A stretch of DNA of 55,702 bases, the filler included, from Sluysia triapertura (lineage: Eukaryota): assembly GCA_046118255.1 (NCBI GenBank). It is 4 parts of 4 records of this genome, joined end to end, with 100 filler letters (N's around TTAATTAATTAA, not from the genome) between each part and the next. Parts side by side here need not be neighbours in the genome. Positions count along the whole stretch, not along the records: positions 44,268 to 55,702 come from JBJNIA010184768.1; 3 more parts are not named here. One strand, 5' to 3'. Positions 44,268-55,702 of the stretch are shown here, in pieces (the first letter of the stretch is position 1; the number at the start of each line of letters is the position of its first letter). The notes beneath the pieces are model-generated. The model was given only the letters and a program-made list of their open reading frames with translations, ran no database searches and was not told where the DNA came from. A program made the translations under genes and the position numbers.

Positions 44268-44418
44268 TTGGTGAATGTAAGTTAGTAAAGTGTTATGATT
44301 GTGTATTGTTGTTTTATGCGGTGAGTTGTGTGGTGATTATAGCTGCATAGTATGATTGTGATTAAAATTATTTTAGTGAAGTTATTTTCAAGCTTAAATT
44401 ATGGGGTTGGCCACTACA
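44268..44418 (-). repeat. Family A-related 5' end, truncated by the linker
   Basis: Reverse complement starts TGTAGTGGCCAACCCC followed by C/A-rich sequence. Confidence 0.5.
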
Positions 44419-45100
44419 TAACTGACTTAGTATTTTCCAAATCAGAAAAATCAATTAATTAGTCGACATTCTTCATTTTTTACATTAATTTTTTAAAAAT
44501 CTGCGATATTAAAACGATTTTATTAAAATTGTTTTTAATTTAATTATTTGTTACTTAATGTTTTATTTACATTTGATTTTTGAATTATTTTCTTCTTTGC
44601 CGATTCCATAGTTAATGAAAATTGTAAATTTAATCATCCAATAAGTTACAAGTTTAGCTAATATTTGTGAACAAATTATATTTGTTCTTTTTTTCTATTT
44701 TAAGTTATAATTAAATTCAAAATGGGCTCTATTTCATGACACTCATATTTTAATTAAATTTAATGGATTTAGATACATTGATTTTAATTCAATAAATCCA
44801 AGTATCGATTATTTGTATAACTATTAAAATAAACAATAAATATATAAAATGATAAATGTAAATATTAATAAACTTTTATAATATGTTTTATTTTATTAAT
44901 TAAAATAGTAATGTTGGATAATTAAAAAATTAAAATAAGAATTATCTGTTCATGTTTACCGATGGATACAAAACAAACTATTTTATTAGTTGTATTTATT
45001 TCTCCGAAATATTGAGCTGAATAGAAAAATGATTATATAAAATGTACTTTCATAAAAAAAGTATCCAAATTATTCATGTATACTGTTAGACTTCGTAAAA

Positions 45101-45171
45101 TGGACTGACCGGATTCGAACCCGGGACCATCGCTGCGCAGTTCGAATGCTCTACCAATGAGCTATCAGCCC
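45101..45171 (-). tRNA. tRNA-Ala-like gene (TGC-type, irregular anticodon arm), divergent partner of the 45275 copy
   Basis: GGGCTGA-TA-GCTC-ATTGGTA-GAGC...CCGGGTTCGAATCCGG-TCAGTCC-A followed directly by TTTT; G3.U70 kept; T arm is one base short and the anticodon stem pairs poorly. Confidence 0.5.
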
Positions 45172-45274
45172 CCGTCTAACAATTTCATTTTCAATATATT
45201 CAATTATACTACTTGGCACTATACTACGTGCCAAGTAGTATAATTGAATATATTAAAAATGAAATTGTTAGATG

Positions 45275-45345
45275 GGGCTGGTAGCTCAGTGGTAGAGCAT
45301 CGACTAAGCAGACGATGGTCCCGGGTTCGATCCCCGGTCAGTCCA
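45275..45345 (+). tRNA. tRNA-Ala-like gene (AGC-type, irregular anticodon arm; may be a pseudogene or SINE head)
   Basis: Acceptor GGGCTGG/TCAGTCC with G3.U70 and A73; A box TAGCTCAGTGG; perfect T arm CCGGG-TTCGATC-CCCGG; anticodon arm TCGAC-TAAGCA-GACGA has a 6-nt loop and one mismatch. Confidence 0.6.
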
Positions 45346-45607
45346 TGGATAAGCCGCGGCTTATATGTATAATATCTTTAATAATGTAACTGCTAAACAA
45401 AAAATCGAACTTATTATTATTATTATCATTATTATTATTACTATTATTATTATTAATTTGTCGTCTGGCAAGATTTTCAAAGATTATAAAATATTAGATT
45501 TTATTTTTTTGAAATTTTGCTTTTGATTTTGTAAACTTAGAAATTTCTAAATTCGAAGTCTGGTTTGGCTACATGACTTTCTTTGAATTTATTAAATGAT
45601 CTTTCAT

Positions 45608-45638
<31 letters not shown>

Positions 45639-48600
45639 TTTTTAATACAAGATGAATCGGTATTACATTTTGTTTATAACAATTATTTTTGCTTACTGTA
45701 CATATTTTCTTATATATCATGCTTATTAAATGGAATGATTGTCTGAAATGTTTTGTTATTTTTCTGTACAAAAACCTATTTAATTTGATTTTCAAATTTT
45801 AATCTGTAAAATTAATTCATGTATTTTTATCTAAAATAATTCAAGATGCAATATTCGTAATGAAATCGATTAGTATCGTTTACTTGTAATATTATTATAT
45901 TGTTTGTCTTGTTTGAATATTAGTAATGAATTATTTAAAAATCTTCATGACCGTTTCTAGTTTTTTACTTTAAAAAATACTATGAAATTATATTGATTTT
46001 TTTTACTGTTTTATAATATGACTTTTCATTTTATATTTAATTTTGTAAAATCTAAACAAAAATCAAACAAGTCAAATTTTGCGGATATACTTAATGAACA
46101 ATGTTATAAGGAAATTTCAATAGTACAAACAACGGTCACAAGTAATATGGAAAGTTCAAGAAATAAGTATGGATAATAAGGAGATAAGCACGAATACAAT
46201 AATTAAAAAGAACGAAAATAGTACAAAGAATTTCTTTGTATTGACACTTAATTTTTATCATAATATACATGCTATTTACTATTTATTATATTCTTACTTG
46301 TAATAGAATCTTAAGAGCTAATAATACCGGTGATTGTATGAATAGGTATCCATAAAACCTTAGTAGTTTAGTACGTTTGTGATCCTATTTTATTTCCATT
46401 TAATCCTCTACAAGTTATATTTAATTCCAGCGAAAACACAAATAAACGCCCGACTCTTATTCTTCTAACAATTATGATTTTAAATACGGATTCGTCTGCG
46501 GTATACGGTTTATAACGTAAAGTAGACGCATCCATAGAAAATGACTACGAAAGAAATTTGCCTAATATCGCTAATGAAAGTCACTTTAATTCTTTAATTT
46601 TCTAAATTAAACAAGTGGTCTGTCAACTTATCAAATTGTTAATTCGTGTAACAATTTTAATTCTAACGTCAAATATGTCTATGATCGTACTCTTATTTTA
46701 AATCTAAAGATTCTTTAAGTCAATTTATGCTCAATTACGTTTATTATTATGTTTGTGTAATTCTGTCTTCCAAAAATTATGAAACTCAAGTAAATTTATC
46801 TTATTTTATGTTATCAAATAAACAATAATAATAACAGTACGTAATTTTTTCAAATAATAATTAACGAACAAAAGGTCAATAAAATTATCAACGAATTTAC
46901 AAACAATGGAACAATTATAATAATAATAGGTTAACAAAAGAAAAATAATCTTTTTCTAATTGTAAACAAAGAATTTTGGTTGAGTTTAATACTTGGGTGT
47001 AAAAATTAAATGATTTTGCGTAAGATTTTAAGGCTAAATGTATTAAAGCCTAACTTAACAATAATTATCTTACTGAAATTCTGATAAAATATTCTCCAAA
47101 ATTGATGCAATTAATATTGTCCAATTTTCTCAAAGTCGTCCAATTTCCAAATCGATTCAATTAGTGTTATCTATTTTCAAATTACTTCTAAAAGATCTAA
47201 GTCCAAATAAATTCTGGCGAATAAAATGATGAATATCTCGTTGACCAAATTTCAAAAAATCCGAATATCACGACGATAACACCTTCTTGTTTAAACGTTT
47301 ATAAAAATTCCTTCACTAACTTGTGTGTTTTGTTTGCCGTATTTATATTTATTGATGATGGACCATAACTCTTCTTGATATCATAAAATATTTTTATTTA
47401 TCAGAATTCAATAATAGAATTGTTTTTTAATGATGAATTCTTAATGTCATAAAATATTTTATTTATAATAGAATTGTTTTTTTAATGATTTTAATGATAT
47501 TTTTATTAGTTTTCTTTATGAATTAACTTTTGTATAATAATTTTAGAACACAAACATTAAATAATTTTTTAGATACAATTTTTTCAAAGTTTTTAATACA
47601 ATTTCAAAAATAAAATTTTTTAATATTTTATCAAAATTAATATTAATACAAAAATTAATATCAAAATTAATACAAAATTTACAAAGATTTTTAATAAATA
47701 CAATACCCAAATCGAATTTAAATTATTTATCTATTAATTTAATTACATTTATTTTATATTATAGTTGTATTATAGGCATACTTCGCATATAATACAGTGG
47801 TAGTAATATGTTCCGAACTTGAAGATAATGATGGGTCGGTGAATATAAAAATCCGAAATGTAAACATTTTCTTATCGGATCATCTTCGACAGATGTCAAT
47901 ATTTATGTTAAATTAATGCTGAAGATGCAAAGGGTTAAAAACTGAATGTCTCAAATGCTAAATATTTGAAAACATTTAAAAACAGGACTATTTAAAATAA
48001 AAATTCAACTATATCGTTGTGATTTGCTACTTTAAAAAAATTTTAATTGTAAAAATATGCTTTTATTTTGTGTGATATAGTTATGCTATTTTCGAAATCT
48101 AGTAGCCGAAATAAAGTGGTTATCAATAAAAGATAATACGGATGTTCATAGTGAAAAATTGAAGTATTGGCTTTATTTAGATTCTATGAGAATAAGAAAA
48201 TCTTCATAGCGTTTACATTTATATTTATGAATGAGGAAGATTTATGACGACGAAGATTATCAAGCGTATTATTTATATAATCATATTATTAGATAAAACG
48301 ATAAAGAACATAAAAATAGTCATGAAACAGGTGAAACTAAGGTTTGATGCTTATAGGTTAATAGCAATATCACAACAGAAAGTCCAGTACAGATCAACTA
48401 TGCTGGGATTTACTAACTTTTGCGGAAGATATTAAAGTTTACGAATTTGTTTCACGAAAAGCAGGATTTTAAAGATCTAGATCGTCAATCGCCACTTGAA
48501 ATTAACAAATAGCTTAAGTTAATTGATGAAATCGATTTTAAAGAACGTCAATGACACATCGAATGTGTTACTTCTGTTGTAAGTTTGAAAATGGTAACAA

Positions 48601-48718
48601 TCTTTCAGATCCGGAAGATCTTATTTTGTCTCCAGTATATGTTTACCAATAAACTGATAAATAGGTGAATAAATATAATAATAATAATAAAAATAAAAAT
48701 AATATTAATATTAATAAA

Positions 48719-49422
48719 TGTGGTGGCCAACTTATTTCCCTAATGAGTTTTATAAAAATTACATAAAATTTCACTAACCTAATAATCATTCTCAAAATCT
48801 ATAAATCACCTTCAAAAATCAACAGAAAACAACATTAACCTAAATTAACACATTCTACATAAAACCATACTTTTAAACATTTTAATACTTCCAAATTTAA
48901 CTCTTACATCCACTAAAAACATCTTCATCCTTTAAAACCAATTAAACCCACAATCTCATAACATTCAAACCAGAATCACATTCAATACCATCAAATTACA
49001 TTAAAAATTCATTTAAAGTATTTTGTCTTTTATCTCAAAACAATGCAAGTACAATCACATTCGAAATTAATCAATAGAGATTTTCAAAGCAATCCAAACA
49101 TTAAATCCTGACAACCAAACACGACTTTATTTCAAAACACCAGTTCATATTCATCACTCATTTTAACGTTTACACTTAAGTCATAACCTTTTGCACCCTA
49201 TTAGATCTTCAGTATCTAAAATTTCCTTAAAACTAGAAAACATTAGTTAAAATTTATATTAAAACGCATTACGCATTATTTTATATCTTTAAGCCGTAAC
49301 ATCGGAAATTCACAATTCTTTAAAGTTTATTGTTCTTATAAATTTTAGATATGTTAAGGAAAGTAAAAGAAAGACATAAAGATCATGTTGTTTATTGCGG
49401 GACAAGGAGTTCATGTGTTTTT
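48719..49422 (+). repeat. Dispersed repeat family A, copy 2
   Basis: Colinear with 6793-7495, same TGTGGTGGCCAAC start. Confidence 0.8.
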
Positions 49423-49909
49423 AGGATAATAATAATAACATTTTATTATTATTATTATTATCTCCATTTTTAATTTTCATTATTTTTGTTAGTAAAATTA
49501 TTTCGTAACTACCACTACCAGTAGTGATTACATAAGATTTACAATTACACTTAATGTCACCACTGATAGTGGTTCATACATCAATCATTCAATTCTTGTT
49601 CTTTATTATTGGTCGTCCAACCAGATTTATTCTAATTACTATTTTTATATTTTCTGGTTGGATGGCCAATCAGGTTGATGTTTGCTATAAAAGGTTTTTT
49701 GATATTATTATATAACCAATCAATGATTACGGTAGCACAAATTTTTGGCTGTATCAAAAATTGTTAATTCCTTAAAAAATTTTACGCATTAAAATTTTCA
49801 GATTAAAAATAACGAAAAAGATTTTTGTTTAATTACAATTTGGCAGCAATTTTAAACTTGTTAGAAAACGCAATTTATATAAATTTATCGATTTTGCTAA
49901 TAAGTAATT

Positions 49910-50849
49910 GTGTTAAAAAATATGTTTTACGTTAAAGTTATTAATGCTACAGATGATCAGAATACAGTTAATGAATTTAATAATGTAAACTTTCAAGCAC
50001 ATAAGGATGAAGATCAGTATAACATGTTTAACATTAGTAAAGATGATAAAGTTCCAGTTATAATTGCTCAAGATAATCAGAATAAAGTTGATGACAAGTA
50101 TAACAACTATCAAATATGCAATTATAAAGATAAGTTTAACCTGATCGACAGCAGTAAAAATGATAATGTTTCAGTTATAAGTGCAAAAGATGATCAAAAT
50201 AAAGTTAATGATGTTGAATATAACAACTATCAAATATGTAATTATAAAGACAAGTACAGCCTGATTGACAACAATAAAGATGATAATATTCTGGTTATTA
50301 ATGTTAAAGACTATAATTTCGAGCATATAATTTTGAAGATCAGTATAATGCGATAGTAGAGATGATTTCCGAAATAACAATCTTGAAGATGACAGTGGCG
50401 AAGTCAATAATGTCGAAGTCAAGTATTGTGAGGCTAGAAGTGATAACCCGAATGACAATAAAGATAACAGTGTTGGAGATGAGTTTACGAAAACTAAGAA
50501 GAAGAAAGATATTCATTATCAAGTCAAAAACATTAAAGAATATGATGGTTTCTTTCGCCGTTATGAAGATAATTTTTACAAATTTAAACAGTGCAAAGTT
50601 AAATTTTTTAGTATTCATAAAAATAATAAATATCTTTTCGAATTTATTTATTATAAATTAATTGTATTTAAATTTCTTAATGATAATAATATTTATACTG
50701 GTGATAAAAATAAATCTAAGGTTAACGAAAGATATAACAATAGTAATGAGTATTTATGTTCACCTAATGATTATAAACGTAATGACCCTCGACTTAGAGA
50801 TAATGAGCATGGATATTACATGTTCAATAAACAAAAATTACTCATCTAG
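49910..50849 (+). pseudogene. Decayed N/D/K-rich ORF with internal ~120-nt tandem repeats
   Basis: Repeated YNNYQICNYKDK..LID..KDDN..VI units; a further stop-free frame 50349-50849 lacks an early start codon; upstream GGCCAATCAG and TATAAAAGG at ~49663-49694. Confidence 0.4.
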
Positions 50850-51304
50850 CTGCTCTGTGTCCAGCTTCTACTGATAATACAAGTATTTGCTTAATGCGTG
50901 GAGTGTTCTGTACTTGACCAATAATATTAACAATATAGAATATCTTTCTAAATAAGTATAAAAACTTCTAATATAGTTAAAAATCAAACATAGCTTCTTT
51001 GAAAAATTTAGAATTTATTCGGAATTTTCATTATTTATCGTCTTTAGATACTTCTTTAGACGTACATTCAACTGAAGTATTATGTTCATGAACCTTTTGT
51101 GCTTTTTTATGCATTTTTAAGCTTCTGATCGATTTTTCCTAGTCTTTCAAATGATGATGGCGATAATCAATCTCAAACATTCTTTTTCTAATTCGTCGTT
51201 TCCCCAAATTTGTAGACACTTAAATTTTAAATTTAAACCCTCTAATTAAATAATGATAAATTTAAACCCTCTAAAATCATATAAAATACTTTATTTATAA
51301 ATCT

Positions 51305-52552
51305 CTAACACTAAACACACCGTCGGTCTATCTATAGATATTCTTACCAACACGGGCCAAATGACCCATATCTATAAAATCATATCTTTTATGTGATACA
51401 TCCAATTTTTTCATTTGAACCTGTTGTATTTATATCAAATTAAACTATTACAGTTTATCCTTATCTTGATTTAAAATAGAAAAATAACAAATCAGTATAT
51501 TTTTTAGACAAAAACATATATTGAAACAGATACATTTAATAAAAATTAAACATATGAAAACATTTCTGATTATTTTTACATACAAAAATAAAAGATAAAT
51601 CAATTTAATGGCTTTATCGTATTTGTGGTAAATAATGAAATATTTAGCTCTTATCGGTTTCCATGCATTATTTTACATCTTATAGGGTTTTCAGGAGCAC
51701 TTTTGCTACATACATATTTACTGCATTTAGAACAGATTGTTGTTGTTTTGTTTCCATTGCAATATTTTATCTGGCACCGCTGTCATGCAGATGAATCCGT
51801 AGATAGTTTTGCATTTCTTAGATTTTCTTTTTCCTCTTCTTGGACATCTTTGAAATTTTCTGCCAGCTCTTAGGCTGGTTTGAATAGAAACTTTTGCTTC
51901 CATATGATTCTTGCCAGATCCAAAATATTGAAAAAAACTTGTAACGACCATCTTCGTGATTTAGATTTTACGGTATATTTTCTTGCCATTAGATGTGACA
52001 CATCAACACCACATTTAGTATTGCTGTAGAACCTGATTGTGTCAGGTTCACACTTAATAGTGTCTTCAATTTTGATAGATTTATGCTTTGAACTAAGTAG
52101 CTTTACTTTTGAATAGTTTATTTGAATAAAGGGGTATGTAATCCTTCGCCTGTTTGGCAAACTTAGGTAATTCTTTTTGTTCACCTGGATAGTCCCGGCA
52201 ACTGTGCAGCCAGAGATAGACCTGTAAAAGTTATACCTATACATGTATATGTGATAACATTTTTTATTAATATATTTTACATTTATAAACATTATAAGTA
52301 TTTATGTTACATAAAAACATAATGAAAACCTCAGGTTTGCATAGAATTTAAATCAGGGTCAATTGACCAATCACGGTAGTTTATGAAACGTTGCATTTTT
52401 TTCTTAAAAGAAGCAGAAGTAAAAAACGTTATACGAAAAAGAATGAATTAATGTTTTAAGAACATTCATTGCAAAAAATAAATAATTGGTAAAAAATCAT
52501 AGAATAACCCTTAAATGGGTCATTTGACCCGGCATGGTGTGTTTACTGTTAA
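51305..52552 (-). mobile_element. Internally deleted piggyBac (PGBD4-like) element with both TIRs
   Basis: PDTIRFYSNTKCGVDV..YTVKSKSRRWSLQVFFNILDLA and a Cys-rich C-terminus; TIRs cTAACACTAAACACACC (51305) and GGTGTGTTTACTGTTAA (to 52552); subterminal inverted GGGCCAAATGACCCAT / ATGGGTCATTTGACCC. Confidence 0.88.
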
Positions 52553-52729
52553 AATCACTTAAAAATTAATTATTTTCCAAAAAAGCAATATTATTATTCC
52601 AAAAAAGAAAGCTATTTTTCAAAAATGAAATTATTTTTCGAAAAAAGAAAATTCGTTTCTAAAAATAGAATGTTATAGAATTGCAAGTGTTTTACTTACA
52701 AAAGCTTAAACTTACACTTACAAAAAAAC

Positions 52730-53290
52730 CTGAAGGTTAGTTCGATTAATTAGATACCATTTTAATCTGAGCGAAGACGTTCTAATTAGATTTTCTTAAC
52801 GTAGCGACGAAGCTTACCTATTATTCAATGCAAAGGAAAATGCTTACGGGAGTTCGTATCGGATTATGAGGATTCGTAAAATCTTAAAACGACAAGTAAC
52901 CAATTTATATGTAACGACAGTATTTTTTGGACAAATGTTTATTATTAATTCGTAATTTAAGTCAGCTAGTTACGATCTGACAATATGATATAAGATTTTA
53001 GAGGTTAAGTCAATCTATTACGGTCTGACAAAGTGCACAATAATTTAAACGTTTTAAAGGAAAAACAATTATTAATGTACGGAATATTTATTGTACAAAA
53101 TCTAATTATACAAAGTTTAATTTTGGACTAAATAAAATACAAAGATAAAAAATAATTATATTAATCATAAAGATTTTAAGCCTTACGAAACATCTCATAG
53201 GCTAATGTGATTTTAGATTAAGCTTATATATTCTTCTTAGGGTCTAGAAAAATCAATGTATTTTAAGTCAGATTTAAAAAAACTCTATTA
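52730..53290 (-). repeat. Dispersed repeat family B head (homologous to 6420-6700 and 21540-21870)
   Basis: Reverse complement TCAGATCGTAACTAGCTGACTTAAATTA versus TCAGACCGTAAAAATGCTGACTTAAATTA at 6663; TCTAATTAGAACGTC..TCTAATTAATCGAACT versus TCTAATTAGACCGTC..TCTAATTAGTCGTACT at 21786. Confidence 0.7.
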
Positions 53291-55702
53291 ATTTAAAATT
53301 AGAGTTATATAAAACTTATACAAAAAACTCTACCTAAACATGGAACTGAAATTTGCAATCTGGTAAGCTTCGATATTAAATGATTGCTAAATTCTGTGTT
53401 GCCGAATTGTAAATTATAATTCCAGAATTTTATGGTTTATATGTTAAAATCTGCCATATTGACATTAATTGTTGATATTTCTTTAAAAATAATCCGTTAA
53501 AACAAAATTTCATTTTTATTAATTTTCATGTTTAATAATAAAATTATTTATACTAAAAATCAAATATTTCATTTTAATTTTCTAAACGTTTACTTAATTT
53601 TTATTATATTAATTTTTATAATAAAAATAATATTTAAATCAAATAATATTTAAATTATTAACATAAATATTGCTTTATAAAAATGATATTTAATTAAATA
53701 ATAAAATATTATTAAAAATAAATAATTAAATGTAATCAAAAAAATGTTATTCCATTTATCAAAAATGTTATTTCCAATAGAACATTGAATCGATATTCAT
53801 TGGTTGATGAGTGATATATAAACTAGCATCAGTTTAATGAGAATCACCATTTTAAATCTACCACTTTGAAAATTTACCAATTTTTTAACTATTCCATATT
53901 GATCAGTCGTTTTTAAGACTATCGTATCTTATTAAGCGAATCAGAGAAGATTTTTTATTGATTCCATGTTAAATGTAAGTTATTTTGTATAAGGTGATAC
54001 TAATTTTGAATGATAAAATTGGTATCTTAAGATACAGGTAAATTTAAATTTCTAAAGAAAAAGTTAACTTTTCCGGTAAATTGAGGGACAAAATGCAGGT
54101 AAATTAAAGCATCAACAAAAAAAGTTAGACTAAAATAGATTTAACTTTAATATTTATAAATAATTTTATTATTTCTTCTTTCTTAATATAATTTCTACAA
54201 TCTTTGTAAATTGTTGAATTTTTGAATAATAAAATGTTTGAATTTTATTTCATTGATAATTGTATTGTAATAAGCTTTATTTATAAAATATTATTGGATA
54301 AAGACATTTTTATAAGTATCAAATTGATTAGTAGTCTTGAATCCTTGCAATTATGATTAAGTTAATTGCTAAATTATCAAGTTGTAAGACGTTTACTGTA
54401 ACTGAACCCTGCTAAAAAATATTTTGCCTCAGGTTATGTATTAGAGAAAAACTTGGTTCATAATAATAATAATAATAATAGTAATAAAAATAATATTATA
54501 ATCATCATCATAAAATATAAATGAAGGTTTATGAATCTATGAAAATAAACAACAAATAATTTATGAAAACGTAAAATATTTTAATAATTTTTGGCAAAAT
54601 AAAATTTTTGCTTATTTATGTTTATTTTGTTGTTTCTAACACAAATACTAATGCACACAGAAAAGAGACAATAATTGGGGGTTCAGCGATCGTGATATTT
54701 GAAGAGCTAAAGATGATACATTTTTATTCGACTGTGTAATGTTAATAAGTTTAGAATGTTTTCTCGCTAGATCATGTAATAAGATCAATTGTATAGGTTC
54801 AGATGGTTGTTCCTATGGTAATTAATTTTGTTGACTTATTGGAGCAGAAAACATATCTGAGTGGATATCTATATTTTTATTCTTTTGATGTATTAAGATT
54901 TGTGTGCCATTTTGATTGTTATTGTTAGCATTTGTTATCTTTTTGTTATCTCGACATGGTTGTCGGAGTATAAAGTAAAGGATCAACATTTTCTAAAGTT
55001 TTCCGAATATTATAAGCATATTTATTAATTAATTTAATTAAATTTGTTTAAAAAAACAATTTCACTCAATAATCTCGCGCAGGATGAAATACAAACACCG
55101 ACATAATACGAATCATGTCAACGTAATTGACGTAAAATTATCAGTTTTAATTAATTTTCTTCATTAAATTTCTGTATATTATAATGAGCGTACGTAGTAA
55201 AAGTATATATCAAATTAATGCTTATTAAGAGCTCATTTTATATATATGTTATTTAATTTGACATACCATTAATGTGCTAGACATTATTTCAAAAGTTATT
55301 ATTGAAAATAAGTTTTATATTTGATTCAATTTTAGTTGATGTATCATTTTTATCAATAAGTATTGTTATAATCATTATGTTAAATTTTAATTTTATTATT
55401 TTAAAAAGATAAGAGTTTGTTTGTCACAAAACATATTATTTTTGATAATTTCTAGATAATACTAAGACAAAAATTCGACGGAAATTAATGTTCAAATCGA
55501 TTAATACAATTGGTCGTCATAAATTAATAAGCATGCACAACATCATTGAATTTTATGAACGAAATAAAAAGAAATAACCTTTTCCAAGGTTTTATATGTT
55601 AAAGTATTAAAGTACATTTCTTAATTAATTTAGTTAAAATTTGTTTAATTTGATAAATTAAGCACATTCACAGATCTAGAGCTTCCGAGTAAAAGATTCA
55701 GA

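Follow-up and report, generated by a model that had tools for sequence, protein, structure and literature searches.

The window analysed here is a 55,702-nt stretch (filler included) of the Sluysia triapertura genome assembly GCA_046118255.1, made up of four parts of four records joined end to end, and the locus under study lies in an 11.4-kb piece of it (positions 44,268 to 55,702, record JBJNIA010184768.1). This piece averages approximately 25% GC and looks like the intergenic, repeat-bearing DNA of an AT-rich eukaryote; no convincing host gene was found in it, and it holds (TTA)n microsatellites and the C-terminal remnant of a piggyBac-like transposase. At 45100-45346, two tRNA-Ala-like units facing outward form the outer arms of a long foldback palindrome, the inner arms of which are AT-rich leaders. 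From left to right, the features are as follows.

45084-45100, minus strand: 3' trailer of the left unit, with TTTT directly after A73 and then 13 nt ending in GTCTAACA; contig alignments and joints begin at 45084
45101-45171, minus strand: left tRNA-Ala-like unit (Rfam tRNA model, 40.7 bits; ARAGORN at relaxed thresholds)
45172-45219, minus strand: AT-rich leader of the left unit (inner arm), on the 5' side of the tRNA-like body (inverted repeat I1; deepest bin of contig depth)
45220-45227, no strand: 8-nt loop TATACTAC at the centre; a second TATACTAC lies inside the left inner arm
45228-45274, plus strand: right AT-rich leader (inner arm), identified from the sequence, the inverted repeat and high contig depth
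45275-45345, plus strand: right tRNA-Ala-like unit (Rfam tRNA model, 50.4 bits; ARAGORN)

Folded as single-stranded DNA, 45100-45346 forms one near-perfect hairpin of 247 bp with its 8-nt loop at 45220-45227, as the first-pass annotation had described. The energy of this DNA hairpin is -117.2 kcal/mol, compared with -24.7 +/- 3.3 kcal/mol for 200 shuffles (z = -28). According to a repeat finder, complementarity between the inner arms (45170-45219 and 45228-45277) is 96%. In the arm-to-arm alignment, 1 of 45 positions differs in the AT-rich inner part, which agrees with the earlier count of 44/45 matches, and approximately 16 of 128 aligned columns differ over the whole arms; with 10 nt of non-homologous flank taken in, an alternative alignment has a column identity of 89%. 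TATA-like runs occur in the right leader at about -35 to -16 relative to the tRNA-like start. The foldback is without coding capacity, as its open reading frames span only 27-42 amino acids. Its outer ends are unequal, with a 17-nt trailer on the left and a stop at CCAT on the right, and no target-site duplication was seen around it (the left flank ends in GTATAC before 45084 and the right flank begins with GGATAAG after 45346).

The surrounding piece contains several further features. A perfect 16-nt palindrome with a GC-rich core (ATAAGCCGCGGCTTAT, 45349-45364) follows the foldback on its right side after 3 nt, within surroundings that are otherwise AT-rich; its depth is 0 in the contigs of run X1 described below, so it apparently lies outside the abundant repeat family. 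Microsatellites of (TTA)n/(ATA)n type, with 10-20 units, occupy 45411-45455, 45608-45639, 48675-48717 and 54460-54517, two of them within 300 nt of the right end of the foldback. At 49904-50846 on the plus strand, two adjoining stop-free stretches of 150 and 166 codons lie in different frames within 25% GC DNA, the first containing 2.2 copies of a 120-nt (40-codon) tandem repeat. This region has no Pfam match, and the reading frame at 50349-50846 had no relative by word search or among 1.84 billion representative proteins. The region represents an orphan gene or else a frame that is open by chance. A search of protein records for exact matches to three reading frames of the window found none. 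The piggyBac-like sequence at 51669-52106 on the minus strand corresponds to the C-terminal part of the transposase (PF13843, E = 0.001, which falls below Pfam's cutoff) and is 54% identical over 164 amino acids to a product encoded on Logan contig L001. Since the N-terminal 415 amino acids have no match in the piece, it is a remnant. The relatives of this reading frame are only 60-79% identical products on short contigs of 31-34% GC, which probably come from other organisms. Adjoining the remnant, at 52568-52670, are five copies of a 20-nt tandem repeat (AATTATTTTCCAAAAAAGAA). A candidate mariner remnant at 54651-54812 was rejected, being without Pfam support.

Both tRNA-like units score as cloverleaves above the gathering score of the Rfam tRNA model RF00005, which is 29. 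ARAGORN at its default settings recognised the right unit alone and gave it a four-base 'anticodon', aagc; at relaxed thresholds it drew both. In these drawings the acceptor stem of either unit consists of G1-C72, G2-C71, G3.U70, C4-G69, U5-A68 and G6-C67, followed by the discriminator base A73, so that the G3:U70 pair and the A73 of a canonical tRNA-Ala are present in both. Pair 7 is A7-U66 in the left unit and G7.U66 in the right unit. The D arm is intact in both, whereas the T arm is perfect in the right unit and has lost one base in the left. A boxes (TAGCTCAGTGG and TAGCTCATTGG) and B boxes (GGTTCGATCCC and GGTTCGAATCC) are consensus-like in both units and face outward. The first-pass annotation had listed the boxes, G3.U70 and A73 as conserved on both sides, and its description of outward-facing Pol III promoters on a palindromic DNA element fits what is seen. 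The left unit has a TTTT run, resembling a Pol III terminator, directly after the discriminator base; no T run was found 3' of the right unit for approximately 130 nt.

The anticodon arms are a different matter. In a canonical tRNA-Ala, the anticodon stem has 5 bp and the loop 7 nt, with positions 34-36 forming an Ala anticodon. Neither unit has this layout: ARAGORN draws a loop of 8 nt ('aagc') in the right unit, where the stem is closed by an A.A mismatch, and a loop of 6 nt ('gc') in the left unit. The triplets AGC and TGC, which had been read as Ala anticodons, are indeed both present, but neither lies within a loop of the normal 7 nt. A tRNA intron was considered as the source of these odd loops and rejected, since the intron mode of ARAGORN returned the same drawings. 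In neither unit does the minimum-energy RNA structure take the cloverleaf form (z = -0.6 and -2.3).

An 8-bp inverted repeat (TGTTAGAC / GTCTAACA, at 45084-45091 and 45175-45182) brackets the left body together with its TTTT trailer, and the motif TGTTAGA also occurs just before the right tRNA-like body. The bracket may be a relic of tRNA gene capture, or it may be due to chance.

The abundance of these sequences was assessed by aligning contigs of the only public run found to contain this locus (X1, from a single study) to 44600-45900, a region of which 68% of the sampled words were present in the run. A total of 6369 contigs aligned, 1475 of them at >=99% identity, 2549 at 95-99% and 2345 at 90-95%. 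Over the six bins from 45084 to 45347, the summed contig depth, which is not a copy number, was 778,991, 870,891, 907,170, 484,838, 801,368 and 766,130. The first of these bins (45084-45127, depth 778,991) covers the left trailer side, and the deepest of all (907,170) is the AT-rich left inner arm. The unique right flank is represented by a 380-nt contig with zero differences and a depth of 13.2, and the other flank bins range from 0 to 60. Measured as summed contig depth in run X1, the repeat is thus approximately 40,000- to 70,000-fold deeper than the unique flank. So high a ratio, distributed among thousands of variant contigs, shows that the foldback is part of a very abundant, diversified family of repeats, comprising roughly 10^4-10^5 units. 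No second copy was found in the 11.4-kb piece. An inner-arm 24-mer, a T-arm/acceptor 26-mer and a degenerate leader/body junction had no matches in contigs of metagenomes, viruses and prokaryote genomes, and the translated repeat, searched against protein collections for spurious reading frames of other copies, also gave no match.

The depth profile also defines what is repeated. Alignments and joints of the family start at 45084, which is 17 nt outside the left body, and the depth falls to 0 in the bin after 45347. Since the inner arm is as deep as the body and the family starts at 45084, the repeated unit looks like a whole former tRNA gene. It consists of a leader of at least 48 nt, a tRNA-like body of 71 nt, TTTT and a further 13 nt, giving approximately 136 nt in total; at this locus the right unit is cut just after CCAT. 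The family occurs in several arrangements. Variants with internal deletions inside the body, a direct-tandem joint (45191 joined back to 45084 across 17 other letters) and an opposite-strand joint were each observed in single contigs, and 10 contigs continue into other sequence after 45219.

These observations bear directly on the possibility that the two units work as tRNA-like genes. Their Pol III transcripts would be processed and charged by AlaRS through G3:U70 and A73, and would then act as non-decoding or frameshifting tRNA mimics. AlaRS ignores the anticodon, and such a role would be consistent with the intact A and B boxes, acceptor stem, G3.U70 and A73 of both units, with the change at position 7 that preserves pairing, and with the TTTT run that directly follows the left unit. 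Nevertheless, a canonical tRNA-Ala gene has a modest copy number within unique flanks, whereas here the leader and the left trailer are as deep as the body, and a very high abundance with thousands of variants, including deleted forms, is the pattern of a repeat and not of a selected gene. Moreover, the anticodon loops of 6 and 8 nt, the damaged left T arm, the folds that are not cloverleaves and a right unit without a nearby terminator all speak against such a function, which we consider very unlikely. The chargeable, non-decoding mimics put forward in the first-pass annotation thus find no support: the unit is an abundant, variable repeat with defective anticodon loops. The other outcome that it had envisaged, decay of an abundant SINE-like repeat, largely corresponds to what was found, with unit and spacer at approximately 40,000-70,000 times the flank depth. 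Judging from the promoter boxes, some transcription from the units is possible, although the hairpin would not be its product, since the internal promoters point outward.

Known tRNA-derived SINEs include rodent ID/BC1, which derives from tRNA-Ala, and the dimeric Twin SINE of Culex. The present repeat resembles them in its tRNA-related head with internal A and B boxes, its degenerate anticodon arm, its very high copy number and its many decayed variants. There are, however, three distinguishable differences. The first is found upstream: the head of a SINE stands at the 5' end of the unit with unique DNA before it, whereas here at least 48 nt upstream of the tRNA-like part belong to the repeat, and it is this upstream inner arm that has the greatest depth. 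The second occurs downstream, where a SINE has a 3' body or tail and target-site duplications. Here, TTTT directly follows the tRNA-like part, the unit ends 17 nt past the body with a depth of 0 beyond 45347, there is no LINE-like or A-rich tail, and no target-site duplication was seen. The third is the arrangement of the units, which is head-to-head and not tandem. Because leader and trailer recur at the same frequency as the body, we infer copying at the DNA level, and not SINE retroposition of a transcript starting at tRNA base 1. Inverted-repeat Alus, which are inverted SINE pairs, offer a further comparison: they too place two SINE-like units in opposite orientation, making a long intramolecular duplex possible, but at this locus the units are separated by only 8 nt, their heads point outward and the shared leader forms the inner stem.

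Taken together, the evidence favours a reading to which we assign a probability of approximately 0.6, namely that the hairpin is a head-to-head dimer of a ~136-nt unit from a very abundant repeat derived from a tRNA-Ala gene, that this repeat spread by DNA copying and that its arms have decayed. The unit would be a whole former tRNA gene, with its AT-rich 5' leader, tRNA-like body, TTTT and 13-nt trailer, that kept the internal Pol III promoter boxes and an alanine-type acceptor stem while its anticodon arm was broken. The family would have spread by DNA copying, either as a foldback/MITE-like transposon or through satellite-like amplification, and head-to-head pairing of two ~136-nt units would have produced the foldback at 45100-45346. 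The arms would then have diverged neutrally by ordinary decay, the bodies faster than the AT-rich leader. Some features sit less easily with this reading. In both arms the acceptor stem, D arm and promoter boxes are intact, as would also be expected if a transcribed product were under selection; this copy also has unequal outer ends and no target-site duplication around it.

A related question is whether the palindrome as a whole, and not the single unit, is what moves. In that case the locus would be a foldback or MITE-type DNA transposon of approximately 250-265 bp, with long terminal inverted repeats that each carry a captured tRNA-Ala gene, and it would be moved by a transposase encoded elsewhere. 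Established examples of such elements are Drosophila FB, zebrafish Angel and the plant elements Stowaway and Tourist. The foldback resembles them in being ~250 bp in size, almost entirely inverted repeat, AT-rich inside, non-coding and very abundant; the inclusion of leader and trailer within the repeat fits movement at the DNA level, and the left terminus at 45084 is common to other copies. On the other hand, the arms at this locus are tRNA-gene-like, the outer ends are unequal, and the flanks share no short repeat that could represent the target-site duplication expected at both ends of such an element. The right end of the foldback may be truncated, so the missing duplication weakens assignment to the MITE/foldback class but does not exclude it. 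The centre of the palindrome is also informative, as the depth of the central bin (484,838) is about half that of its neighbours and 10 contigs enter different sequence past 45219; the junction with the 8-nt loop is therefore not demonstrably common, and direct-tandem and other arrangements are present as well. We regard a mobile palindrome as a possible but rather doubtful explanation. The two units here may represent the long inverted ends of a single element, or two separate units that became paired locally, head-to-head. A high abundance and a left terminus common to other copies were observed, while the palindromic organisation of other copies is a property that short contigs cannot display. 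Phrase and sequence searches of the literature, with repeat libraries outside their scope, found no description of a tRNA-gene-like foldback or MITE or of tRNA-Ala-derived repeats of such a kind, and this silence is weak evidence of novelty.

The centre of the foldback deserves separate attention, because no contig of run X1 crosses it, the breaks lying at 45220 and 45229. Repeats of high copy number are easily misassembled, and two repeat copies could have been wrongly joined in inverted orientation in the assembly. However, hairpin arms longer than the word length are expected to break short-word contigs at any hairpin, and for the same reason such contigs cannot show whether other family copies are palindromic. 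Furthermore, palindromes that arise from chimeric reads are perfect, whereas the arms here differ at approximately 16 of 128 columns, which argues against this type of sequencing artefact, and they enclose an asymmetric 8-nt loop. An overlap join, in turn, cannot link a sequence to its own reverse complement. A misjoin is accordingly extremely unlikely.

A further possibility is that the palindrome gives rise to hairpin RNA. Transcripts reading through the 247-bp foldback would form a long double-stranded hairpin that could be diced to siRNAs or miRNA-like RNAs, and these could in turn silence the family. The RNA of the 289-nt region folds into a single hairpin (-197 kcal/mol, z = -24.5), and the region gives weak matches to Rfam models of long-hairpin miRNAs, with which it shares the overall shape. 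The scores for MIR7723, mir-1662, mir-4866 and mir-3473 (68.7, 39.7, 37.4 and 29.1 bits) nevertheless lie well under the respective gathering thresholds of 200, 85, 100 and 71.8. These families were rejected, since the matches are far below threshold and stem from generic hairpin pairing and not from shared sequence. In addition, the internal Pol III promoters face outward and would not transcribe the hairpin. A role as a small-RNA source is thus predicted to be quite unlikely.

The pattern of divergence between the arms remains to be explained. The tRNA bodies do differ most in the anticodon arm, as the first-pass annotation had stated: 9 of 18 alignment columns differ there, compared with 6 of 54 in the rest of the body, corresponding to about five mutational events. 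The excess has p = 0.001, a value that counts alignment columns which are not independent. Comparison with the family clarifies where the changes arose. A 30-nt fragment comprising the D arm and the anticodon arm is common to 16 other family contigs, and the left arm is two substitutions away from it; the right arm differs from it by two one-base deletions and three substitutions, and has an extra A just beyond the fragment. For the T loop, the right arm has the majority form of the family, CCGGGGATCGAACC, whereas a base is missing from the left arm. The left arm also has an extra G at the leader/body junction, which is absent in 43% of the depth. Each arm thus has private departures from the commoner family form, and the 'variable anticodon arm' is mostly a cluster of about five events in the right arm.

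The spacer was found to be better conserved than the bodies, with 3 of 49 columns differing compared with 15 of 72, a statistically modest difference (Fisher p = 0.036). The first-pass annotation had taken this to be unexpected of a neutral duplication, but the argument is weak given that p value and the contrast in composition. The bodies are 58-59% GC and contain 5-6 CpG, whereas the leaders are 23-28% GC and contain 0-1 CpG. In a 25% GC genome, GC- and CpG-rich bodies are expected to change faster than an AT-rich spacer from mutation pressure alone. Mutation pressure may therefore underlie the greater divergence of the bodies, as an expectation from base composition and not a measured rate.

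A bolder proposal combines several of these elements. In this scheme, a DNA-level foldback mechanism would have multiplied the whole Pol III unit (leader, tRNA-Ala-like body with G3:U70 and A73, and terminator) into tens of thousands of copies. A subset of them would be transcribed, giving either hairpin small RNAs or RNAs that have 8-nt anticodon loops and can be charged with alanine, and these products would have a cellular role. We give this proposal only slim odds; if true, it would define a new class of mobile tRNA-gene mimic.

Overall, the locus most probably represents mobile or repetitive DNA in decay rather than two special tRNA genes. An odd-looking locus is thereby explained as repeat DNA, and the case for special tRNA mimics is removed. 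The repeated unit nevertheless carries an upstream leader and a terminator, which are not expected of a classical SINE, so a whole tRNA gene may have entered DNA-level amplification. Tens of thousands of intact A/B-box pairs, together with long palindromes, could have consequences in this organism for the titration of Pol III factors, for chromatin boundaries and for the stability of the genome.
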